DNA of 64,000 nucleotides from Calcarisporiella thermophila CBS 279.70 (taxonomy: Eukaryota > Fungi > Calcarisporiellomycota): positions 1,209,531 to 1,273,530 of the forward strand of contig NW_027192194.1 of assembly GCF_041956535.1 (NCBI RefSeq). The letters are read 5' to 3'. Positions 29,648-49,668 of the stretch are shown here, in pieces. The notes beneath the pieces are model-generated. The model worked only from the letters and a program-made list of their open reading frames with translations, did no database searches and was not told where the DNA came from. Every line of letters begins with the position of its first letter. Position 1 is the stretch's first letter. The position numbers were made by a program, and so were the translations under genes.

Positions 29648-29654
29648 TATATAA
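29648..29654 (+). promoter_or_regulatory. TATA box of Cys-rich microprotein gene A
   Basis: TATATAA about 135 nt upstream of ATG 29788, followed by a pyrimidine-rich leader. Confidence 0.5.
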
Positions 29655-29787
29655 GACGCCCATTATCATCGGCCCTATTTATTTTTCCTTCCCTCGCTCC
29701 TCCTGTCTTCACTTTCCCTCCTCTCCGGCGACCTTCGAGACTGCGGCAAGAAGAAAAGAAGAATTCCCAGAAGCCAAGCAACGAACC

Positions 29788-30021
29788 ATGTCCGAGATAG
29801 TGTGGGTTCCCTTTCATTTCTGCCAAAACTGCGGAAGCGGGTGGCGAGGGAGCGGGTAAAGACAAGCTCAAGGCGACGGCGGGGAGTCTCCCCTTGCTAA
29901 CCATATGTTTATGCCCAGATGCTGCCACTATCCAACTCCCAACACCATCCTCGTTTGCCAGACCTGCAGTGGCCAGTATCCGGGCCACTACACCTCGTGC
30001 TTGCACACCTATGGCATGTGA
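29788..30021 (+). CDS. 56-aa Cys/His-rich putative zinc-binding microprotein, paralog A (exons 29788-29855, 29919-30021)
   Basis: MSEIVWVPFHFCQNCGSGWRGSGCCHYPTPNTILVCQTCSGQYPGHYTSCLHTYGM*. 63-nt GT-AG intron with GCTAAC branch point. Paralog at 44336 has the same intron position. Confidence 0.88.
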
Positions 30022-31696
30022 AGAGGTGCAAGGCGTCGTGTCCCCTCTGCCCTCTCTCCCCCCTTCCCCCGTTTACGTCGCTGGCACGACAAAAACATCC
30101 ACGCAAAACCTCCCCCTCTATGTAGTATTTATTCCCATATCTTCAGTAGCCTCTCCCTCCAAAAAAGATCACTGCACATGAACCTCCTCCTCATTTTTCG
30201 TGTATATTTCTATGCCTTTGATAGCTATCGATAGCGGCTGTGTGTATACTTTATTCATCTCAGGCTCATTGCTACCTGTGTTATTGTTCATTTCATTAAT
30301 TAGAGAATAACAAAACGGAAGCGGTAAAGTTGAAAATTCTCTCACGTCATTCCTCGCCCCACCCCGGTTTGGTGTATCACTCCCCCAATAGCCTTTAATT
30401 AAAGGCTAAAGCCTGCAGTAAATTGGATCCCCAATTCTTTAATGCTATCGGCTTTCTCCACTCATTTTCAGCCACATCTAAAATTCCAGGCCCTCGGAAG
30501 AGCGTTATTTTTCCGATGGCAAGTGATCCTTTGAATTCCGAAATTTGGCGGCATAAGTTGCTGCATGCGAGGGCCTGCGATTCCGCCTTTTTAGCAGCGG
30601 GAAGCCCTTAGGCCTTTTGCGCGGCCTTGGCTTCTCCGAGTGTATTCATAGTCCATTTTCGCCGTTACGAAAAGAGCCCTCCTCTCATGCAAGCGTGCAG
30701 AGAAACCTTGTGCTCCTCTCGTTGACGTTCCCCCCCCCCTCCTTACGTAATATCATGGAGAGTAGCGCTTGATCTAGATTGAATATGGCTCTACGTTGGT
30801 AGGGAGAAATCCTACTCAATAAAAAACCAGAGTTTTCAAACCATAAATGTACCGCCTATTGGGAATGGCATATTGTTTTAGGCGTTGTTTTCGCGCTAGT
30901 GACTCAATCGCCCTTTCCCCATTTCACAGAAATCAATCATTTTGTTGAAACGGGAAAAAAGGCGACTAGGAATAGCGTTCAGGCCATCATCAGTTGATTC
31001 CCGACCTGCATTCGACTTATCTCCCCTTCCAATGCGTCTCCTGGGGGGCTTTGGATAAGACGCCGACCCACCTACTCATCACGTGCGGCGCTCGGAGCCA
31101 GACGGAAGGATCCATCTGCCATATGGATGCCGTGCATGAACTTTCAACCCTCCACTTTCTGCTCCCTCTGCGGACCGCAGGCGCACACCTTGAATTTTGG
31201 GGAAAATCAACCAACTAAGCCATGCAGACAACGTGGAAATTCAATCCGCGAGCGCCAATAGAAGGGCCGTGGCTTTTCAACAAACTGGTTTGGCATTGGC
31301 CGGCGTTTCGTGGTGAGGATGCGGGATCGGATTCGGATCGCTCGCCAGTACGAGGAGAACGCAGCTGGGATATGTGCAGAAGAAAGCTGATCTGTCGAGC
31401 TTTTTATTACCGTGGAGGCTGTATTTTTTTCTCACCCCTAGGGCCACAAGCCAGGAGGAGTCTTGATATATTCGCTGTTGACGAATCATTGCGCTTGGAC
31501 GCGAAAAGAATTTAAAGAACGAAGCACCACTCTCTCCCGCATACTCTAACACCAACACTTCGGAATCTAAACAAATAGAGCCGCCGCTCTCTCCAACAAT
31601 AAACCTCTTTCTTTTTCGATCCTCCTCTACTCCATTCGTTCTTGCTTAATCCCCTGCTCATCTCCTTTCGCAGCAATCTTCCCCCACAGCCCTGAA

Positions 31697-33181
31697 ATGG
31701 CCCGACTTTACCTCCTCCTTGCTGCGCTCGTGGCTGCTGCCTCTGCCCAGAATACTCCATTGGCCAATCCGAATTGCGTCAATGCATTCGACCCGAACGC
31801 CAAGTATTTCAAGTATGAAACCAAAGGTAACTAGTACCAGACTGGATGGCATCAGGATATTATGGCCCCCTCAACCCTATTCCCCATGTCATGTCTAGTG
31901 GACACGGCGTCCCTTTTCAGTATACAGTACTTTAATAACTACAAGCTTGTGTCAAACAAGTATTCTAATCAGACCTTCGCCCTCGTCCAATGTGGCACTC
32001 CGCGTCCAGCGAGTATCCCAGCGAATATGACTGTTTTCGAGATTCCTGTGAGCCGAGTTGCGACACTTGAAACTACAGCGACCGCCTTCCTAGACTACTT
32101 GGGCGTCGTTGACACTATCGTCGCTTTTGACACAGAATCCGCCGTCACCTCTCCATGCCTACAAAAAAAAAGGGAGCAGGGCTCAGCTAGAGCAATTCCG
32201 AGCAATATAACCGAAACAAACCTGCTGCTTTCCAATGTGGATGTGGTCTTTGGGGGCTCCTTCTTCCCCAAGGATATGAATCTGACCAAAGCGGTTTATA
32301 CAAGCGAAGTCCAAGATCCTGGACCACTTAATGTAAGTTGCCATTTCATAGGGCTGCTTCGAAAGAGGGGCCTTGTTATTTATATTCCGGCGTTTTTCAT
32401 TCCATCTTTCAACCAATTGATTCGATAGCGTGCGGAATGGTTGGAGTTCTTTTCTCTGTTCTACAACTTGGAAGAGACGGCCGAAAAGAAGACGAGAGAC
32501 ATTAACAACAACTACAACTGCTTCAAGAATGGCGCTGCCAAGGCTAAATCAAAACCACTGGTCGCCTGGACTTCCTATTTGGCCCCGAGTGAGTTCAACA
32601 ATAACACCGCAAGCTGGAGCATCTCGACCGCTGCCTACAAGAAGCAGCTGACGGAGGATGCCTCCGCCCTCTTCCATGCGCCCACCACCTTTAACTTCAA
32701 TAGCTCCGCCGCCTTCCTCGAGGCAATGAAGGAGGTAGACGTCATGATCGATGAGACGTTTATCGCCAGAACTATGGACGATGTGCTCAAAAACTATGGC
32801 ATTAGTGACGCTGGGGCGTACAAATTCACGAAATCGCAGCAGGTATACCGCCTTGACGGTATTCAATCCACAGGAGGTGGCTTCGACTGGTTTGCCACTC
32901 CCGTTGTGCAGGCAGATGCGACCCTGGAAGCGCTGATCTACGCACTGCACCCGGAAATGAAGAACGGCAAGAGCACCCGGTGGTTCCGCAACGTCGCTAA
33001 CGACCCCATTTCAGAAAGCACTCCTGGGAGCTGCTCGGATGTCAAAGCTGCTGCCACTTCATTAGCAAGCAACTGCCAGTCTCTGACATTTACCACGTCG
33101 GCCGCATCCTCTCCCGCTACCGCCACTGCTCTGACCGTGTTTAGTGCGGTACTTGCTGCGGTGACTGCTCTATTTGCGTAG
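31697..33181 (+). CDS. Secreted/GPI-anchored periplasmic-binding-protein-like protein (Fe-siderophore/cobalamin SBP fold; CBA1-like)
   Basis: Signal peptide MARLYLLLAALVAAASA; FSIQYFNNYKLVSN, LVQCGTP, IPVSRVATLETT..AFLDYLG, VTSPCL, DPGPLN|RAEWLEFFSLFYNLE, DVMIDET, GGFDWF; Ser/Thr/Ala-rich stalk plus hydrophobic tail. Confidence 0.8.
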
Positions 33182-33852
33182 GGCTAGTTTGTGAAGAAAA
33201 TACTCCGGCTCCAGTTCCCCCTTCGATTGCCTGGGGGAGGGGGGAGGGGGCAAAGACTCTCCTTTAATTAATTTATAGTTCCTTAATGATTCTAGTATGT
33301 GTATTTAAGTATATTAATGTGAGGCTTTGAGGCTCTGAAACCTCTGAAATCATGAATGAAGTGCAGCGGCTCTGGTCCCCAACTAGCATTGCAAAATACA
33401 CCGAGAGAAATTCCTGGTATCCTGATCATATGTTGGCTATAAAAGTGTTAATGCAGATTGGATCGATGACCAATCGCTTGGCTTATGTTTTGCCTCAGCC
33501 TCGGAACAAAAAAAAATTAAGCTTAAGGAGTCAAAAGAGAGGAAAAATAACAACGGATAGCAGTTACCACACTTCATTTTTTTCCATTTTTCCATTTTTC
33601 CATCTATTCCTTCAAAAATCGTTACGAAACCAATGGCGGTATAATAATAGAAACATCATTACAAATTGAAAGAACCTCCGTCTCCAACCTTTGTTTTCTC
33701 TTTATTTGTCTTTGCTAATCGCCTAAGTTTACACCCCCCCCCCCCTTTTATTTTTATCTGCTTGATTATTTTATTTTTACTCTTTGATTTGCTTAACAAC
33801 CGGTCAAAGCTCAAGCTGCATTTGTCATACTGGATCACTCTGCTAGCAGGTC

Positions 33853-36800
33853 ATGCGCGCCTTTGGTATAGAACAGTGGCACACTGTTCTCTTCTTGCTT
33901 TTGCTCGTAGCCACGCTATTTGTTTCTCTAGTAGACGGTATGTTTTAATTCATAGCCACCCCCATCGTGTTTATTTTTATTTGCTCCATTTCATCAGCCC
34001 GATGACTCTGGCATTCACTATCATATTAATAATGTGCATATTCCACATGCTTTCCCCATAGGCGATTCACAAACGGATCGTCCGCTTTCCAGAATTGAAT
34101 TTGTCGCCCAACCTACTTTTAAAATACTACCGCGACTAAACACTGAATCATCACAGCTTCACAAGCGTTCTTCCCTGCCGCTTGAAGAGAACCTTCAACA
34201 CGATGATGCGGTCCTATTACGTTTCCGCGCCTACGGTCGCATTTTCCACCTTCACCTTGAACCCAATCTTGACCTTCTACACCCCGATGCTTCCTTCGCG
34301 ATCCACGACCCTGAAACTGGGGCTGTGAAATGGGAACCCCTTCGTGCTGAGGATCATCTAGTGTATAAAGGATGGGTTGCAGATGATCACAACACCCACC
34401 AATGGTACGAACGGGACGCGATTGGAATCGTGCGTGAGGAAAATGAGAAGTGGCGTGAGGGTGCGTTGGGATGGGCAAGAATTGTGGTCCACAAGGACTC
34501 CTCGCGGCCAACTTTTGAAGGGGCATTTACGCATATGGGCGAGCTATACCATGTGAAGCCGATTGAAACTTACAGCTTGACGAAGAGAAGTGAGGATCCA
34601 TCCGTACAGCATTTATTTGCACGGGGTTCGGAGCAGAGCGCCGCAACAATGGTAATTTATCGAGACTCTGACACTGTACCTGAAGCTCTTATGAAGCGCG
34701 ACACTGCCATCATGGGGCCTAGCTTATCCTGCGCCATGGACGAGTTGAAATACAACCATGTATTGCGCTCGGTCCCGCTTGAGCAGCGCTTCTCATCCCT
34801 CATCGGGGCTCCCATCCAGCACGATAATTATCTCCCGCTGGATTATACCTTCAGCCCGCTAGAGAGGCGAAAACCTCTCCTCTCCACCTTTCCCTCTCTC
34901 TCGCTTGAAAGGCGCGCACCCGCTCCCCCGCGGCAGTTGGCCGCGACGGGGTCTCAGGGATGCCCAACCTCAAAAAGAATCGCCTATATTGGAGTTGCGG
35001 CCGACTGCACTTATGTCCGTAGCTATACTAATGTGGAAAATGCCCGGCGTCAGATCATTACCGACTTCAACCAGGCGTCCCAGGTTTTTGAGCAGGCATT
35101 CAACGTCGCTCTCGGCGTGATCACCATTGATACCCGCCCGCCCCCATGCACTAATGGGGCTGACAAAAATGCCACGTGGAACCGCGATTGCTCGGACGCC
35201 TACAACATCAACCAACGGCTCAGTGATTTTAGCCAGTGGAGAGGATCTCTTGGAGAAGATGGTGCGGCACTATGGCATCTGATGACGCAGTGCAAGTAAG
35301 TGTTGTTGCGATGAAACTTTCTACCTCCGCTTCTCCATCCCCCTTCCCCTATTCACTGAAAAATGGGTTCATGTATTTAATTTTTATGTTGTTCCTTGGC
35401 TAGCTCCAAGTCGAGGGTGGGGATAGCGTGGTTAGGACAGCTATGTACCTCTTCGGCAAGTAAAAACGGGGGTAGTAGTGGAGATAGTACGTATTCTCTT
35501 TCTTTCTAGACTCATCCTGCTGAAATTTAACTCGTTTTATGTCTTGGTGAATGCCCATTTGAAAGGCATCGAGATGAGCGGGGATGAATTCGTGTCCGGT
35601 ACCGGTGTTTCATCCATCACAAGAGATGAGTGGAAAGTCGTCGCGCACGAGATAGGGCATGGTTTTGGTGCGCAGCACGATTGTACCAGTGCAGATTGCC
35701 CTTGCCCGAGACCAGGGGAACCCCACTGCAGCCGGTGTTGCTCGGCCACCCCACAATGTGATGCCAATGGACAGTTTCTCATGAACCCCACGAGCAACAC
35801 CAGCACCAACCAATTCTCACCATGCTCTTTAGGGGAAGTTTGCGGGACCATCCCTAGCAAAGGATTTTGTTTGCAACCGCCCGGGTTGAGGAGAACCGAG
35901 AAGCTCGCCATGTGCGGGAATGGAATATTGGAGGAGGGAGAGCAATGTGATGCGGGGCAACAGGGGAGCGAATGTTGTAACCCGGATTGTACGCTCAAAC
36001 CTGGAGCGGTGTGCAGGTAAATAGCCCGCAAGAGTGCTTTGTGTGTGGGTTGGAATGCGCACGTGTACTAATATCCTCCATCTGTTTTCTTGGTACCTTC
36101 ATTCTAGCGATGCCAACAGCGAGTGCTGTGAAAAGTGCCAACTCAAGCCGGCAAACACGGTGTGTCGCCCTGCGATCTCCAGCTGTGACATCCCCGAGAC
36201 CTGCAATGGCACCAGCCCTATGTGTCCCGATGATAAACGCGTTCCGGACGGGACGGACTGTGGGGCCAACGGATTAAAATGTGCATCCGGTCAGTGCACA
36301 TCGCGTGACCAACAGTGCGCCTCCCGAGGCAACATGGGGGGTGGGCGTGCCAATCTCACCACGGCGTGCAACTTCCAGGATGGATCCTGCGCCATTACTT
36401 GCAATGACCCGGGACGGCCCGGCACATGTATCCGATTGAGCGGTAACTTCATCGATGGGACACCGTGCGGATATGGCGGGAAGTGTTTCCATGGACAGTG
36501 TCAGACGGGCAATGTGCTTGACGTCGTGAGGGACTGGTTCAACCAGAACAAGCAGATTGGAATTCCGGTGGTTGTGGCGCTGGGTCTTCTGATACTCCTG
36601 GTGCTTTTCAGGTGTGTTTATTTGTGCTTCCAACGAAAGCCCGCCTCCAAACCAATTGCGGTGCCGGTCGCATTGACCCCGATGCCGCACTACCCAGCCA
36701 CTCCTTCGCATTACCCGCCTCCCCCGCCCCCGCCTCCCGCCGCCTATAATGCGAACATGGGACGGGAGAGTGGTGCGACGAGCACTGGTTGGGTAGATCC

Positions 36801-37155
36801 AATGCCTTATAATGGTCCATATGGGGCACCGCCGGTGTACCGCTCCCCTACCCCCAACAGCAACACCCACTACAGTAACCACACCCCAATGCCCGAGCCA
36901 TACTCTCAGCAATATCCCCCACAAGCTTCCCCTCATTCGTTTACCCAACGGCGTGGGTCGTCTGCACCGGTGACGGAGCACCGCCCGGATGGAATCGATC
37001 ACTCGGGATACAGCCCCTACAACCCGCCCGAGCCTTTTTCACCCTCTCCGCCCCCGATCCCATCCCCTACCCCCCCGCTCCCGCCCCCTCCGCCTCCACA
37101 TCGACATCAGCGTCATCCTCCGGGATCTCCGCCCCCTGCCGGAAATACCAACTAA
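33853..37155 (+). CDS. ADAM-family metalloprotease (prodomain, reprolysin, disintegrin, Cys-rich, TM, Pro-rich tail)
   Basis: Signal exon MRAFGIEQWHTVLFLLLLVATLFVSLVDG; HEIGHGFGAQHD zinc motif with Met-turn FLMNP; CGNGILEEGEQCDAG; CDIPETCNGTSPMCPDD; TM IGIPVVVALGLLILLVLF. Confidence 0.93.
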
Positions 37156-37757
37156 AGGAGAGGGAGGCGAGGAGGCCCTTTTCTTTCCGGTTGTATTTTA
37201 TTTGATCTTATTTACTATTATTTCGCAGGATTTTTATTTATATACCGTTCCCTCTTCAGCTTATTTTGAGAGCCTTGACTCTTTCTTTTCTTTCCCATTC
37301 TCCTATTGTCCCTAAGTTTTTCTCTCCTTCTCTTCACCCCACCGTTTTTCTTTATTATTATTAATCTGAAACTGTACTTATTCACTTTTCATTCTTGGTT
37401 TTTGACTCGGTTCTGTAAAGATCTCTATGAATGCCCAGTTCCATCCCCACTAACAATAGAACTCATTTGTATTAAACCCCCTTTCAATCTTTTGCACAAT
37501 GGCAGTCAATTTTGGTCTAAGGGGGATCTATCCATTGATCCCCTCTAGGATGCAGTTTTTTCTCTCCTAGATGAGTCCGTTTTTGCTATGGCTATCGAAG
37601 TTCGGTTGATGTCCAAATTCTATGTTGTTTTTATTTCATCCGCAAAGCATACAATACAAATGTTCTAATTCTAGCTCCTTCCAGAGGCTCTATTGAGAAG
37701 TTTTTCGGCCCCACCTGGTTGCTCTAATGCATTGACGAAGTTCTTGACTCCTCCGAA

Positions 37758-38285
37758 CTATTTCGGCCCGGCTGGCTTCCCAGGACTCTGGCTACTCTCG
37801 TCTCGGCCCTGGTTATTAGCCAAATCTCCGGCGACCTTCTCTGCACCTCTGATGGTGCCTTTAGTTATCGCCCCCGCCGCAATCTCAACCGCCGGCTTGG
37901 CTAATTTCGACCCCACTTTAGATGCAGCCCCCAAGCCAGTAGCCAGCCCCACACCCTCGATGACGCCCTCTTTGACAGAGTCAATTCGGGATGCCGTGTT
38001 ATCTATATGTGGAGTTCCGGTGATCTTTTCCGAGAGTGCTTTGCCACCATGATTTCCCAGCGTACCTCCCACCACGGCACCGCCTAATGCACAGAGGGGA
38101 GCAAGCGGAGCGCCTGCTACCGACGTCAAACATGCGGTAGCCCCTATTCCTGCGCCTGCAAGGGCACCACCGGCGGTGGAGCCAGCTTTTATGAGCCCGT
38201 CCTGGGTAAAAAAGTCGGGAGAGGGGGTGGGAGCCCCATAGGATACAGAGATCGCAGCGAAAAGGATGAGTAAAGGCGTCTTCAT
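37758..38285 (-). CDS. Small secreted glycine-zipper protein (intronless)
   Basis: Signal peptide MKTPLLILFAAISVSYG followed by a GxxxG array AGSTAGGALAGAGIGATACLTSVAGAPLAPLCALGGAVVGGTLGNHGG. Confidence 0.7.
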   Translation of the reverse strand: MKTPLLILFAAISVSYGAPTPSPDFFTQDGLIKAGSTAGGALAGAGIGATACLTSVAGAPLAPLCALGGAVVGGTLGNHGGKALSEKITGTPHIDNTASRIDSVKEGVIEGVGLATGLGAASKVGSKLAKPAVEIAAGAITKGTIRGAEKVAGDLANNQGRDESSQSPGKPAGPK

Positions 38286-39178
38286 AGTTGGTGTTAGAAT
38301 CTTGGTCGAATGCACTCACCTTCGTCCTATTTATAATGGTTTACCATGATATGCTCGAAGATAGACGTATCGAGACACCATGCTGCTATTCAACATTATT
38401 GGTACTTCAGAATCATTTTGTATTTGGAGCCCCTTTTTAGTTTTCTGCGTAGAATTGGAGCATGTATTCCTGTAACTAGCGCATCCCTATTACATCTTGC
38501 AGTTGAACCGAATTTGTCCATCCAAATTTCCTCATAAGGCAAGAACTTGGATTGAATTCTCTGGCAAGCTCCGCCTTTGGCAGTCAACATGTTACAACAG
38601 ATAGATGGATATCGGTTACGAACCTCTCGTTATCGTATTCCTCTGGACTAGGACAATGTAGTCCACGAATGGTCGGTAGCCTACCTGCCAAGGTCAGCTT
38701 GCAGGCTCACAATATGGCTAACAGTTCCAACAAGGACGGGGGAGCATGCGTCAAATAGAGATATTTCACTAACAGATAAGAATAACACAGGAAGGCAGCT
38801 GGACCCTTAGATGCAATGATAGGCAGGATGAACTCAGCAGTGGCAAAAAAGACGGCAGATAAGGGACAGAGTATGGAAACGTGAACAATAAAACTAGCCG
38901 TCGTTATTCGAATTTATTATGTAGCGTTGGGTAGCAAAGCCTTTGCATTCAGGCGATGCGTTTTCTGTAGGGGCATTGCGAGGGCTCACTTAGTAGCCGT
39001 TTTAATAAAGGGGATTTTCGAGGGAGTCGTTTTAGTAGAAGAAAGTTTATTCAAATATCCAGTAGAGCTCCCAAACATAGTTGATCCCAGAAGCAAGGAA
39101 ACCAAAACTTCTCACAACTATCTTGGTTAGGCTGTGAGGGTAAGTCACTATACTAGATACAACAAGCCAGGAGAGGGC

Positions 39179-40129
39179 TTAGTACAGGCGCTGGGGCTTG
39201 CCCATGGTGGACTTGATGAAGAGGGACTTGACGTTTTGCCAGTTCTTCTTGAGGAGCGAGACGAGGAAGTTGATGGAAAGCATGATGTTGGCAACAAGCT
39301 CATCCTCAGTCATCTGCACGTGACCGACGGCAACACCCAAGCAGAGCACCTTCTTGAGCTGGAACTTGATGGTGGAGCGCTGCTCTTCGGCCTTGGCGAG
39401 AAGGTTGTCGGAGTGCGAGACGGGAGTGGGGAATTTACCAGCCTTCTGGAGACCGGGACCAAGGAGACGGGGGATCTGACGGATAAGGGCATCAGAGGCA
39501 AGGAAAGCGTCGTACTTCTTGGCTGTTGGAGGAGGGGGGGGGAGAGAAAGTGGGGATGTGTCAGTATCTCATCGAGAAGCGGAACAAAATGTAGGGAGAG
39601 CTTTCACTAACCGAGCTTCTTGACGAGCTTCTTGTTCTTGTTGAGCTTCTTGAGGTCATCGACCGACATGAACTCAAGACCGACCTCCTTAGCTTGATCG
39701 CAGTGGAAGGCATCGGCAAGGATGCACACGGACATCTTTGGGCGGGGAACATTGGGGAGACTAAATACAAATAAAGCAAAGCCAATAAATTGACCGTTAG
39801 CCAAAATGCCAAATTATACATCAGGAGACGAGAGGGATACATACCGGACAGTACCGCTGAAACGCTTGTCCCTCTGGGGATCGTAGTTCTTAAGACCGAC
39901 CTGCAATTCAACAGTCTCGGTGAACTTGCGCTTCTTCTCCTCGGATTGAGTGAGGATAGCACGGACGGATTCCCTCACAGCACTGACTGACACTTTACTG
40001 TTGAATGGATTAGAAACGAGAGTTGATTAGTGCATGGTGTGGAAATTGAACTTATAGATATGGGGAACTATAGCGGAGGGATGGATGGATGGATGAATGA
40101 ATAGAAGGGCGAGTTGACACATACCTCAT
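39179..40129 (-). CDS. RPL1: 60S ribosomal protein uL1 (L1/L10a)
   Basis: [30 protein letters not shown]|[25 protein letters not shown]...[14 protein letters not shown]|[10 protein letters not shown]...[13 protein letters not shown]...[12 protein letters not shown]. Confidence 0.96.
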
Positions 40130-40395
40130 GATGGATGTTCCTGTATTTCAAAGATGAAAAGGAAGGAATCTTTTCTTGCTGCTGTTTTCGCGAAATATCA
40201 AGCCCTTGGATTCTCAGCCACTACAGTCACAAATTGGTGCGGCAGTATCGGAGTAGTATGGGGGGGGGTAGATTAAGGAAGTATCAAGGAAATATCCACA
40301 TTATCCCTAACCAAGAATCAAAAAGTCGCGTCTCGTCGAAAAGATCTTAACTCATAGTAGCGGGGAAGTAGAGAGAGTGTGTGAGAAAACCAATT

Positions 40396-43040
40396 ATGAC
40401 CACATCTCATCTCAGCAACACGACGCTTGACGTTCAATATTTGCGCGAATTAGCGCGTAAGCAACTGACCGATGTCTTGGATTCGGTAAGTTGATAATGA
40501 CCAGTTCCCTCTGATCCTTCTGCGCACTTGCCTGGGCTTTAGTTTCTTTCGATGTCTAATTTCCACTGCTACCCTGTTCTCTCTAGGTGCGAGGGAAAAA
40601 AGCTCTCGTGTTGGATCCTAGTTTAAGCGGTCCGCTTAGTCTCATAGCTGAATTCAGCTATCTTAAAGTAAATGAGTGAAGAATTTGAATGAATTTATTG
40701 CGCGGAAATAATATAACGTACGAGATGATTAAATAGGAGCATGGAGTCGAAAAGATTTACCATCTTCAGCCTGGTCCTTTGGAAACCGATTGCCAAAGTC
40801 TACTCTACATTTGCCGAGCTCAGATCAAGAACATGAAACACCTTGCCTCCCACATTCACCACCACACCTCCACGTCATCTCCCTCACAAAAATACGATTA
40901 CCACCTATTTTTTACCCCTAGAAGAACATTGATATGCGAGCGGGTGCTGGAAGAGGAGGGGGTCCTGGGCGAGATTACCATGGGCGAGTTCAAGCTCGAG
41001 TTTATTCCCTTTGAGGACGATGTGATATCCTTGGAAATGGAGAATTCTTTTCGCGAGTTGTTTTTGGATGGAGATACCACTGCAGTTTACCAGGCGGCTA
41101 AAGCACTCATGTCCCTGCAGGGGATGTACGGGATAATACCACGGATTGTTGGGAAAGGAGAGTATGCCAAGGTAATAGCCGTTTGGTAGTATCCGAATAT
41201 TTGGACGCCCGGTTTATTTTTCTTCCATGCTCTAGCTACTTGCTGATATGCTTATCCGGATGCGCCGGGAAATGGCCGCGGACGATGACTCTACTCTGGT
41301 TAGGTCGCCCACCTCCCCCCATATTGATTCGATCATCATTCTTGATCGCTCTGTGGATCTGATCACTCCTCTCTGCACCCAGCTTACCTATGAAGGATTA
41401 ATTGACGAAATCTGGGGCATTCGCAATGCGTGTGTGGAATTCGACACCTCCGTGGTTGGCACCCTCAGCCCCCCTCCGAAGGTGTCTGGCTCCAGTTCTT
41501 CGGCTACCGCGCCGCCCCCCGCAAGCAAGAAGCGACGAGTACAGCTGAATTCAGGGGATCGGCTGTACTCCCAACTAAGAGACTTGAATTTTGCGGTGGT
41601 GGGCGGATATTTGAATCGGGTGGCCAAGAGGATTAACGAGAACTATGAGGAGCGGCATCAAGCGAAAACGATCACGCAGATCCGCGAGTTTGTCGGGAAG
41701 TTGGGGGACCTACAAGTAGAGCATCAGTCCCTGCGAACGCGTAAGTGGGGATCGCCAATATTAGAAAGTGGATGGGGAGGTATTGATTTTTGCGTCCGCC
41801 TTGGGGGGCATTTTCTTTTCTTCCACCTAGATACTGGGATTGCGGAAGAGATTATGGCGTACACGCTGTCGGAAGATTTCAACAAAGTGCTCGAGGTCCA
41901 ACAAAACCTGGTGGCGGGCATCGATTCGACAGCCCATAGCGATTATTTGGAAGAGCTTATCAACAAACGCGCGCCACTTGTTCAGGTACTGCGGCTGCTT
42001 TGCCTACAGAGCCTCGTAACGGGGGGACTGAAGCCTAAGGTGTATGATCACCTGAAGCGCGAAATTTTGCAGGTTTGCCGGCTTTTATCCAAGAGACATC
42101 GTCCCCCCCTTTTTTTGATATCGAATACGTTTTCATGTAGACCTATGGGCACGAGCACCTACTCACGCTTTCCCGATTGGAGGATTTGCTACTTTTCACC
42201 AAGCAACTTCCGGTTCGGCCCACCTATCCCCAAGTGCGCAAGTCTCTACGCCTGATTGTCGATGACGTGAATGAGCATCAGCCCAACGATATTTCGTACG
42301 TGTACTCAGGGTATGCCCCTCTGAGCATCAGACTGGTGCAGTGTGCGGTGCAGCGACCGGTGGCGAGTGCGGGTGGACCCATGGGGGTCGCTGTGAGCGG
42401 CGGGGGAGGTAGTGGCGGAAAGAGCGGGGTAGGGTGGCGAGGATTTGAAGACGTGCTGCGGATGATCCCGGGTAAAGCTTTCGATGAGGTGCAGCGGGTG
42501 GAAGATGGCCGAAAACATTTGGCATCACGTGAGTATTGAGCATCTCGGGTTACCGATCGATAAAACCTACCTGTCTCCTTATTGATCTCTATCTACCTAA
42601 TTCAATCTAAAAAAAATTCCCGTCCATCCCAAAAATTATACAGACGCAGCGGGCACTCCTCGCATTACTCTTGTCTTCTTCCTCGGCGGCTGTACCTATA
42701 CTGAAATTTCCGCAATCCGATTCCTAGCACAGCAGGAAGAAGGTAATATTTCCATCTCTGGAATCCCCCTCGCCCTTTTAATGGTTTCGCTGTTTATCAA
42801 TTTATGCTGCCTGATGAATAATGCCTTACGTTCGATCATGCTCGCTGACCTTGTGCTTTTATGTTTGCTTTTTGCCGGATAGCGCAACGTGAGTTTGTAG
42901 TTGCGACCACGCAGCTTATTAACGGGAACACCCTAATGTCGTCGTTGATGGAGGAGCGGGGGGCACGAAAGGAGGGCCACAGGGAAGCGGGCGGGAGTGG
43001 CCTAGGGGGAGGAGGCACCGGAGCTGCTGCGGCCATGTAA
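40396..43040 (+). CDS. VPS33: Vps33 (Sec1/Munc18 family, HOPS/CORVET)
   Basis: VRGKKALVLDPSLSGPLSLIAEFSYLK|EHGVEKI, FTPRRTLICERVLEEEGV, IILDRSVDLITPLCTQLTYEGLIDE, DISYVYSGYAPLSIRLVQ, LVFFLGGCTYTEISAIRF. Confidence 0.95.
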
Positions 43041-44157
43041 ATGTTAAATAGGCCTCATCGGTCGGCCTCATGTTCGCGTTCCATTTACCGAACAATAACC
43101 TTGTTTGCAGTGATACTTTGATGTTTTTATTTTAAGTGTGAGAGCTGTGTATAGGAGTTGATTTCTTCCCCTCCTCCATTTCTGTTTTTATTTTCTTTTC
43201 CACCATTTCTATTTGCTATTTGCTATTTGCATTCCTACTTGGCTCAGACTCCATATTGGCGAGTTATTGTTTGGACTGATGAGAAGATTATGCATTTCAT
43301 GGAAGAAGCACATGGAGATAGACAGATCAACTCTATTCCTCATGGATATTGCAGGCCATCACTTTTAGCTCTCTCTCTCCTCCTTCTCCTCCACCACCTC
43401 CTCCGCCTTGTTCTTCTTCTTGTTCTAGTTCTCGTTCCTGTTCCAGTTCCATTTCCTGTTCTAGCTTCCTCGTTGTTTGCTTCATATTTCCCTTATTGCA
43501 AATAGAGTTACAATCTTCGGCCTGGATTCCATGGGTTAGGATATTTACAGTGGTAGAAGGGGGGAAGGAGGGAGGGGAGACGAGCGGGAGAAAACTCTAT
43601 CTTTCTCGTGCTAGCACATATTTTCTTTTTCATTCCTGCTCTCCCCCTCAAGGTTTTTTGATCACGTCCAACCTTGAGAAATCTTCTCCTCCTTTCATTT
43701 CATGTATCCAACCTTATTTGCAAACGTTTTTTTTTCTCAAGTACGGCGCTTCCGCTTTATTGTCAGAGGAAGTTTCTCAGCGAGTTGATCTGGCCCCATT
43801 TAAGCGAAGGGGGGAAAGGGGGACGTGCAGGCTCCAGAGCTGCAGCGTGCCCGGCAACCCCAATCCTCCTCCCCACATGCATGGTGCTCACCATGGCTGC
43901 GTGCGGATGGAAAAAAAACACCTTAAAGCACATTAGATTGCTTAATTTCATAAGTCAAAAACCTTGTTTCTCTCGCAGTAACATGCCCACGAAGTCTATC
44001 TGAAGCCCCTCACTCCCTCCTTTGGGTGGGAAAAAAACCTAACTCAGCTCTTCGCGGCGAACCGTAAAGTGGTTTTCCCCTGTAAGCTATCCTGCCCAAG
44101 TGCACCGTTTTGTCATGTCGAAAATCCTAATTTTTTCAACCACGGGCCATCTTGCAG

Positions 44158-44165
44158 TATATAAA
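44158..44165 (+). promoter_or_regulatory. TATA box of Cys-rich microprotein gene B
   Basis: TATATAAA about 175 nt upstream of ATG 44336, followed by a pyrimidine-rich leader. Confidence 0.5.
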
Positions 44166-44335
44166 GCATCAAGGGCGAGGGCTCGCGACATCTCACTTAG
44201 CCTTCGATCCCCTTCCTCCACTCCCGCCTCGCTTGGTAGCCTTAGCGCCGCCCTCCTCTGTTTTTCTTCTGTTTGGCTCCTCGCCTCTCCCCTGCACGCG
44301 CGATCCGAAGCACCCCTCCCGCGAAGATACCCCCC

Positions 44336-44576
44336 ATGGCCGAAGTCGTGTGGATCCCGTTCCAGTTCTGCCAAAATTGTGGAAGCGGTTGGAAAGGCGT
44401 AAGGTAAGCCGCGGTTGAGTGCGGGTATCCCCCCCCCCCCGACGGATAGGCTCATCTCCGCCTCTATCCCTGTGATTAGCTGCTGTCACTATCCGGCCCC
44501 AAACACCATCCTCGTTTGCCAGACCTGCAGCGGCCAGTACCCAAGCCATTTCGCCACCTGCCAGCAACTCTACTGA
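44336..44576 (+). CDS. 54-aa Cys/His-rich putative zinc-binding microprotein, paralog B (exons 44336-44403, 44480-44576)
   Basis: MAEVVWIPFQFCQNCGSGWKGVSCCHYPAPNTILVCQTCSGQYPSHFATCQQLY*. 76-nt GTAAGC...TAG intron at the same codon and phase as paralog A. Confidence 0.88.
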
Positions 44577-47548: not shown

Positions 47549-49668
47549 ATGAAGAATCGGTTCCTCTTAATTGTACCGCTACTGGCGGTACTTCTCCTTA
47601 TCGCCACACCTATTGTTTTCGCACAGAACGACAAGCCGAATTATGGCACTGGTATGCACACTACCCTGTAGTTAATGCTAGATGGGATATTCTGACAAGC
47701 TTCTGTGATTTTAGTCATCGGTATTGACTTGGGTACAACATACTCTTGCGTTGGTGTTCAGAAGAACGGTCGTGTTGAAATTATGTAAATATCTGTTCAT
47801 TTCTGTTCGTTCAAAATGGTATGGCAATTTGGATAGCTAATCTCATCCACCACCTCTTTAGCGCCAATGACCTAGGAAACCGTATTACTCCTTCTTACGT
47901 CGCATTCACCGACGAGGAACGTCTCATCGGTGATGCCGCCAAAAACCAGGCCCCCGCCAACCCCACCAACACTATTTATGACGCGAAGCGTCTTATTGGA
48001 CGCAGGTTTGATGACCCCGTCGTCCGTGAGGACGTCAAGCGCTTCCCCTTCAAGGTGGTTGAGAAGGACTCGAAGCCCGCGATCGAAGTCACTGTCAAGG
48101 GCGAGCGTAAGACTTTCACCCCCGAGGAAATCTCCGCCATGGTACTCACCAAGATGAAGGAAACCGCTGAGGCCTACCTCGGTAAGAAGGTCACCCATGC
48201 CGTCGTCACCGTGCCCGCCTACTTCAATGATGCTCAGCGCCAAGCAACCAAGGATGCCGGTGTTATTGCTGGCCTCACCGTTCTCCGTATTCTCAATGAG
48301 CCCACCGCCGCCGCTATTGCGTACGGTCTTGACAAGACGGGCGGAGAGCGTAAGATCCTTGTGTATGATCTCGGTGGTGGTACTTTCGATGTCTCTCTTT
48401 TGACCATTGATGACGGTGTGTTCGAGGTGCTGGCCACATCGGGCGATACGCACTTGGGTGGTGAGGACTTTGACAACCGCGTTATTGACCATTTCGTGAA
48501 CCTGTGGAAGCGCAAGAACTCCGAGGACATCACCACTGACTTGAAGACCATGGGCAAACTGAAGCGTGAGGTTGAAAAGGCCAAGCGTGCTTTGTCGTCC
48601 CAGATGTCGGTGCGCGTTGAGGTCGAGTCTTTCTTCAAGGGCAAGGACTTCAGTGAGACGCTTACCCGTGCCAAGTTCGAGGAGCTGAACAACGACTTGT
48701 TCCGCAAGACGCTCCGCCCTGTCGAGCAAGTGCTCAAGGATACCAATCTCGCCAAGAGTGACATCGATGACATTGTGCTCGTGGGTGGCTCTACCCGTAT
48801 TCCCAAGATCCAACAGCTCCTTGAAGACTTCTTCAACGGAAAGAAGGCCTCCAAGGGAATCAACCCCGATGAGGCTGTTGCGTATGGTGCCGCCGTCCAG
48901 GGTGGCATTCTGAGTGGTGAAGAGGGCACTGAGGACTTGATTCTCCTCGACGTCAACCCATTGACCCTTGGTATCGAGACCACCGGTGGAGTGATGACCA
49001 AGTTGATCCCCCGCTACACCACCATCCCCACGAAGAAGAGCCAGATCTTCTCCACGGCGAGCGACAACCAGCAAACCGTCCTCATCCAGGTGTTCGAGGG
49101 TGAGCGTGCCATGACCAAGGATAACAACCACCTCGGCAAGTTCGAGCTTACTGGTATTCCTCCGGCTCCTCGTGGCGTCCCGCAGATCGAGGTTACCTTC
49201 GAGATCGATGTGAACGGTATCCTCCGTGTGTCCGCTGTCGACAAGGGCACCGGCAAGAGTGAGTCGATCACCATCACCAACAACAAGGGCCGTTTGTCCG
49301 CCGAGGAGATCGAGCGCATGGTGAAGGAGGCCGAGCAGTATGCCGAGGAAGACAAGGTGTTCCGCGAGCGTGTTGAGGCCAAGAACGGTCTTGAGAACTA
49401 CCTCTACACCCTGAAGAACCAGGTCAGCGACAGCGCCGGTCTTGGCGGTAAATTGTCGGAGGAGGACAAGAAGACCATCTTGGATGCCGTCAAGTCGAAG
49501 ATCGAATGGATGGACTCGTACTCTGCCAGCGCAACCAAGGAGGACTTTGACGAGAAGCGCGAGGAGGTAGAGAGCATCGTCAACCCCATCACCGCCAAGA
49601 TGTACGGACAGGGTCAGCCTGGCTCCGCCGAAGGAGAGGAGAAGCCACCATCTCACGATGAGTTGTAA
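47549..49668 (+). CDS. KAR2: ER Hsp70 chaperone BiP
   Basis: Signal peptide [25 protein letters not shown]; [41 protein letters not shown]; C-terminal HDEL. Confidence 0.98.

Follow-up and report, generated by a model that had tools for sequence, protein, structure and literature searches.

We identified a family of nine small genes in Calcarisporiella thermophila, a thermophilic fungus of the Mucoromycota (genome listed in PMC11393059). Two members, here called gene A and gene B, lie in the window, by which we mean the whole analysed stretch of 64,000 nucleotides (strain CBS 279.70, contig NW_027192194.1, positions 1,209,531 to 1,273,530), and the other seven are intronless paralogs on which, together with these two, searches of the whole assembly converge. 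This double-knuckle family is real and undescribed; the kind of part from which it is made is known. As for its function, we favour by analogy a folded two-zinc mini-domain that would bind partner proteins and modulate them, a reading to which we give about an even chance. The structure of the two genes in the window is as follows.

29648..29655, plus strand: TATA box of gene A, 140 nt 5' of the ATG
29788..29855, plus strand: exon 1 of gene A, with the E-x2-W strand and the first CxxC knuckle
29856..29918, plus strand: intron of gene A, phase-2 GT-AG, 63 nt, GTAAAG...CAG, with a branch-like CTAAC
29919..30021, plus strand: exon 2 of gene A, with the CC pair, the second knuckle L-V-C-x2-C-x3-Y-P-x-H-x3-C and the stop; product 56 aa
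44158..44165, plus strand: TATA box of gene B, 178 nt 5' of the ATG
44336..44403, plus strand: exon 1 of gene B, consistent with the public protein P0001
44404..44479, plus strand: intron of gene B, phase-2 GT-AG, 76 nt, GTAAGC...TAG
44480..44576, plus strand: exon 2 of gene B with the stop; product 54 aa, exactly P0001

An earlier sequence-only reading had proposed two spliced genes here, without an intact frame, and its coordinates were borne out: exon 1 is 68 nt long and the intron in phase 2 in both genes, and without splicing either frame runs into a stop after 23 codons. The TATA box it had claimed for each gene was found at 29648 and 44158, and the intergenic DNA 5' of the genes, put at more than 1 kb, spans ~1.17 kb for gene A and ~1.3 kb for gene B. 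The window contains the C-terminal motif twice, and none of 20 shuffles contains it; the pattern is not due to chance. Gene B has tandem GTAAG donors (window 44399-44408), the upstream of which, at 44399, would lead to a frameshift with 47 codons read into exon 2; the public gene model uses the downstream one. Neither product has a signal peptide, which supports an intracellular location.

The comparison of the two genes supports the view, reached from their sequences, that both are real and that purifying selection acts on the peptide. As had been counted by hand, the two products agree at 38 of their first 50 residues. Aligned exon by exon, the genes encode the same residue at 39 of 53 codons, 15 of which differ synonymously (about 14 had been claimed). 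The proportions of differing synonymous (pS) and nonsynonymous (pN) sites are 0.61 and 0.14, giving a ratio of nonsynonymous to synonymous divergence (dN/dS) of 0.12 (Fisher p 1.3e-7), far from the value near 1 that would have spoken for absence of selection. Introns and 500-nt flanks, previously described as unalignable, indeed gave only background local alignment scores (14-23). Across the paralogs, pN/pS lies between 0.2 and 0.6 in the 26 of 36 pairs computed, in blocks picked by motif, which biases the ratios low. Their pS values of 0.6-1.0 are near saturation between most members, so the family is old.

The earlier claim of two paralogs thus holds for gene A and gene B and falls short of the family's size. 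All nine genes are stand-alone, ATG-initiated frames of 53-62 codons, and they fall into two subfamilies, a split with support 96/91 on the exon-2 region.

Subfamily I: gene A, gene B, C18a (contig C18, 441.8 kb), C9 (366.8 kb) and C25a (268.1 kb)
Subfamily II: C23 (131.6 kb), C20 (570.3 kb), C25b (394.8 kb) and C18b (358.1 kb)

Only gene A and gene B carry an intron. Exactly at its position C18a has a 4-residue insertion (contig C18, near 441.9 kb), and a 4-codon upstream open reading frame (ORF) ends 2 nt before the C18a ATG. A TATA-like element lies 76-281 nt 5' of eight of the nine genes, and a search for upstream motifs in the family found nothing common beyond TATA and A-tracts. In the case of C18a, ~540 bases upstream (contig C18, near 442.5 kb) are N, and the view of its promoter is limited to the nearer DNA. 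Three further candidates were rejected: one on C21 had no motif ORF, one on C19 was a chance match and C4:873k is the eL40 gene. A stretch on contig C7 (190702-190740, plus strand) has the N-terminal pattern, interrupted in frame by a TAG that falls after the Trp and before the first Cys; judged by its letters, it is possibly a decayed tenth copy or else a chance match.

Standard annotation has largely passed this family by. Gene A and gene B were searched exon by exon, while full-length searches and folds are those of the intronless paralogs. With the latter, a hidden Markov model (HMM) search of 1.84 billion representative proteins recovered P0001 (E 1.9e-20), which is identical to the spliced product of gene B. 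An independent gene prediction therefore has the same intron, and the description 'unannotated' in the sequence-only reading is wrong for gene B; for the seven intronless paralogs it fares better, none being present as an exact sequence in a 15-billion-protein collection. The other matches of the HMM search, which include no homologue, were a Marchantia repeat protein, a double zinc ribbon (DZR) protein and a dubious ORF. The first of these (KAG6542040.1, P0002, Marchantia paleacea) is a 1107-aa hypothetical protein with seven zinc-finger-like repeats, W-x-C-x2-C-x-W-x-Y-P-N-x-H. Its knuckle resembles the C-terminal half of the family (83%), probably because the two have a knuckle pattern in common. 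Outside this genome, word-index protein searches and a metagenome scan found no homologues, the matches read from DNA-motif scans of viral, metagenome and prokaryotic contigs were chance or off-frame, and all ESM Atlas matches stayed below 0.9. Pfam, PHROGs and NCBIfam gave no significant match, and our literature search found no account of the family. Given that these searches cover mainly annotated or prokaryotic/metagenomic proteins, and that at least seven of the nine members escape them even in C. thermophila itself, restriction of the family to one lineage is not established.

What holds the family together is a set of eight Cys/His residues in the order C,C,X,Y,C,C,H,C, found in all nine members. 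The X,Y pair is CC in gene A, gene B, C9 and C18a, H-x3-C in C25a, and C-x6/7-H in subfamily II, where it is embedded in W-P-C-x6/7-G-H. The nine-ligand invariant motif of the sequence-only reading is thus right between gene A and gene B and too long for the family, since C18a and C9 have F or T in place of His26, and Cys24 also varies among the paralogs. The seven intronless members share without exception, and gene A and gene B also possess, E-x2-W, the first C-x1/2-C (CxC in three members), a further Cys, the Leu before the second C-x2-C, and the Pro, His and Cys that follow. All nine share the second half, L-[VI]-C-x2-C-x3-[YF]-P-x-H-x3-C. Eight conserved ligands are enough for two tetrahedral sites, and from this pattern each protein probably holds two metals.

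An AlphaFold model of C25b, built on seven sequences, has a mean predicted local distance difference test score (pLDDT) of 82, reaching at least 90 over residues 11-40. It consists of strands 9-15 and 33-39, a single bridge after each knuckle and a C-terminal helix (52-59). The C18a model is weaker (pLDDT 71). Fold searches yielded no significant match (best Z 2.3; Foldseek E>0.8), and the domain is so small that such a result is no proof of a new fold.

How could such a protein work? In the partner-binding mini-domain that we favour, the two long strands would pair in antiparallel fashion, with a CxxC (or CxC) knuckle following each of them. This pairing, suggested by the registers of both models, would place ligands 1-4 at one end of a small beta ribbon and ligands 5-8 at the other, as two structural zinc sites. 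An exposed hydrophobic edge strand would then dock on a partner protein, making the product a small adaptor, activator or competitive inhibitor, and paralogs with their own promoters could serve different expression conditions or different partners. We think of structural zinc and protein docking because the conserved non-ligand residues (E-x2-W, the L-V/I before the second knuckle and the aromatic-Pro after it) are hydrophobic and the products of gene A and gene B are close to zero charge (K+R = 1 and D+E = 1). There are precedents. Deletion of stand-alone zinc-finger microproteins in Haloferax alters biofilm, swarming and stress phenotypes (PMC6562870), and the 60-aa AfTrm112 activates its enzyme partner through a beta-zipper (PMC7641767). 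By analogy only, the family may work like these proteins. Several points weigh against our reading. The AlphaFold models, built on 5-7 sequences, have a predicted template modelling score (pTM) of only 0.51-0.55, and both the ligand grouping and the antiparallel pairing were derived from DSSP strings only. Moreover, for all the likeness of the two halves, the internal repeat is not significant, its score being reached by 12 of 100 shuffles. Zinc was missing from 5 of 14 such proteins in Haloferax, and AlphaFold2 failed to predict the site geometry (PMC11241148). Finally, the genes neighbouring the family point to no consistent pathway.

The variability of the first site also invites a different explanation, namely a redox or heat switch, in which a vicinal Cys pair would lose zinc on oxidation and change shape, serving stress control in a thermophile. 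The site 1 ligands do vary and include adjacent cysteines, CCCCT resembling the stress response element (STRE) is somewhat commoner upstream of the genes (25 vs 13.6), and two members lie near Hsp70 genes. Yet the CCCCT excess, counted uncorrected for composition, is explained by C-rich promoters, the heat shock element (HSE) shows no enrichment (6 vs 6.9), the Hsp70 neighbours are two distinct genes, and no homology to known redox switches was found. We consider such a switch improbable.

As regards the Hsp70 neighbours, an endoplasmic reticulum (ER)-type Hsp70 gene (window 47550-49668) follows gene B at a distance of 3 kb, and a cytosolic one is arranged divergently to the C23 member, ~1.3 kb away; their proximity is probably a coincidence. 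One paralog has as its neighbour an intronless Hsp70 gene, KAL1916427.1 / XP_069247699.1 of C. thermophila. Downstream of gene A is a metalloprotease gene.

34034..37155, plus strand: exons of an ADAM (M12B) metalloprotease

Like gene A, C18a is followed within a few kb, and in the same orientation, by an ADAM gene. The two ADAMs are each other's closest match over most of their length (58-65%), which points, on sequence grounds, to an old segmental duplication. There are six ADAM (M12B) genes in the genome (contigs C4, C9, C11, C18, C20 and C23), five of them on contigs with a family member, adjacent on C4 and C18 and at distances of 33 kb on C9, 68 kb on C23 and 344 kb on C20. It is possible that these contigs represent old paralogons. 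A transposon-derived zinc domain was considered and rejected: no terminal repeats surround gene A or gene B, and the nine loci have no common flank homology apart from the ADAM and Hsp70 neighbours. Between gene A and gene B lie two ordinary housekeeping genes, one for a uL1-like ribosomal protein (spliced, window 39179-39993, minus strand, named from its translation only) and one of the Sec1 family (Vps33-like, window 40779-43040, plus strand).

The family, presently known from one species, is a well-supported case of a multigene protein family largely missed by standard annotation. It also offers a compact scaffold, predicted to hold two zinc ions and probably heat-stable, whose natural CC/HC/CH swaps at one site lend themselves to studies of zinc-site plasticity.

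Among known systems, fungal metallothioneins (Binz and Kagi families 8-13) come to mind first, being likewise small, Cys-containing, multi-copy and intracellular. A metal buffer or metallochaperone of this kind would store or pass on Zn or Cu through its thiols, its capacity lifted by gene number. The small, Cys/His-rich, multi-copy products without signal peptide would suit this role, as would ligands 3-4, which alternate between C and H across members, and the metal-related genes near gene A (the ADAM protease, and CBA1-like and HExxH genes as labelled in the sequence-only reading). Metallothioneins are, moreover, polyphyletic and often missed by profiles (PMC4755600). Against this, the family is 10-17% Cys with 6-9 aromatics per chain (Cys 12.5-13% and aromatics 14-15% in gene A and gene B), roughly half the Cys share of a fungal metallothionein candidate with 25% Cys and no aromatics (PMC4755600). 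It has, in addition, conserved non-ligand residues, a conserved hydrophobic core and a predicted beta fold. No Pfam metallothionein profile matched at E<=10 (seven intronless members) or E<=1 (four exons), and upstream metal (MRE, 7 vs 5.4), copper (CuRE, 4 vs 5.7) and zinc-like (ZRE-like, 2 vs 2.0) response elements are not enriched. The sequence-only reading was right in setting the family apart from classical metallothioneins, and we regard buffering as unlikely, less so than the other alternatives but behind a partner-binding mini-domain.

Closer likenesses are found for the C-terminal half. With double zinc ribbons and Zn_Ribbon_1 (PF12773, PF13240) and with eL40 this half, and only this half, shares C-x2-C-x3-hydrophobic-Pro-x5-C (C-x2-C-x10-C). 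Against double-zinc-ribbon repeats it reaches an hhalign probability of 82% (13% for the N-terminal half), and the ESM Atlas holds shape matches to it (root-mean-square deviation 2.6-2.8 A over 23-24 residues). Unlike in the double zinc ribbon, the closing pair is without its second Cys in all members, a conserved His sits inside the loop (CCHC), and the proteins stand alone at 53-62 aa without a Pfam match. Judged by its sequence, the C-terminal half is a zinc-ribbon-type knuckle with His in place of the missing last Cys, a known building block in a new family. The earlier statement that no zinc-finger class is recognisable therefore holds for catalogued families and fails for this half. The profile matches in the PDB are weak and limited to the knuckle: AfTrm112 (6zxw_H, E 0.014), ATRX (E 0.018) and eL40 (E 0.2).

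The CCHC set of site 2 (C-x2-C-x6-H-x3-C), with its eL40-like spacing, could also suggest a binder of single-stranded nucleic acid, mainly in subfamily II, in which aromatics would stack on bases. Trp and Tyr/Phe are conserved, and subfamily II combines 5-7 K/R with a basic C-terminal helix. Nonetheless, gene A and gene B have 1 basic residue each and C25a has 0, and the spacing is unlike that of retroviral-type zinc knuckles, which is C-x2-C-x4-H-x4-C. The likeness to eL40 is confined to the knuckle (hhalign 40%), the fourth Cys (C-x2-C-x10-C-x4-C) and basic tail of eL40 being absent from the family, and the genome's own eL40 is a separate gene. Nucleic-acid binding thus appears rather improbable, if slightly less so than a redox switch.

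With archaeal 60-aa Trm112 (PF03966) the family shares the L-V-C-x2-C-x3-F/Y-P knuckle and 20-22 residues between CxxC pairs. Alternatively to our two-ended ribbon, then, the two CxxC pairs might bind one metal as a cross-brace, as in Trm112, Kti11/Dph3 or rubredoxin-type ribbons, with ligands 3, 4, 7 and 8 binding a second, and the protein might activate an enzyme or carry electrons. AfTrm112 is indeed the best PDB profile match, and subfamily II has C-x-C-G-x2-aromatic, the pattern of CSL fingers. However, the family has four extra ligands, and the C-terminal I-x2-G-I-P strand of Trm112 is replaced by H-x3-C. The PF03966 model matches only the genome's true Trm112, and the CSL (Kti11/Dph3) model PF05207 only true CSL genes, with three matches in the genome, on C1 and C15; neither matches any of the nine family loci. 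Fold searches did not recover Trm112, Kti11/Dph3 or rubredoxin-type folds, and RING/PHD/MYND/LIM-type cross-braces gave no Pfam match and only E>3 rows for LIM, PHD and ZMYND11. This is the alternative we find hardest to credit.

In their general design the proteins come nearest to the haloarchaeal C(P)xCG zinc-finger microproteins (HVO_0758, HVO_2753, HVO_2901), which also are stand-alone, single-domain proteins of <70 aa with two CxxC-type motifs and several genes per genome. The family differs in being encoded by eukaryotic genes, two of them with an intron, and in its eight ligands including His. Matches to the haloarchaeal proteins are weak and non-significant (E 0.13 and 0.36), and we treat the likeness as one of analogy. 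Should other early-diverging fungi prove to have homologues, microproteins of the stand-alone zinc-finger type would make up a regulatory layer of eukaryotes as well as of haloarchaea. A bolder, tentative proposal, which we hold to be doubtful though less so than metal buffering, would see in the family a new type of mini-fold with two zinc ions: a pseudo-symmetric beta ribbon that carries a knuckle at either end and accepts CC, HC or CH ligands interchangeably at its first site. On this view the family would be widespread among early-diverging fungi, though missing from their annotation, and would belong to a wider micro-proteome of zinc-finger proteins that regulate by binding other proteins, the eukaryotic counterpart of the haloarchaeal microproteins.

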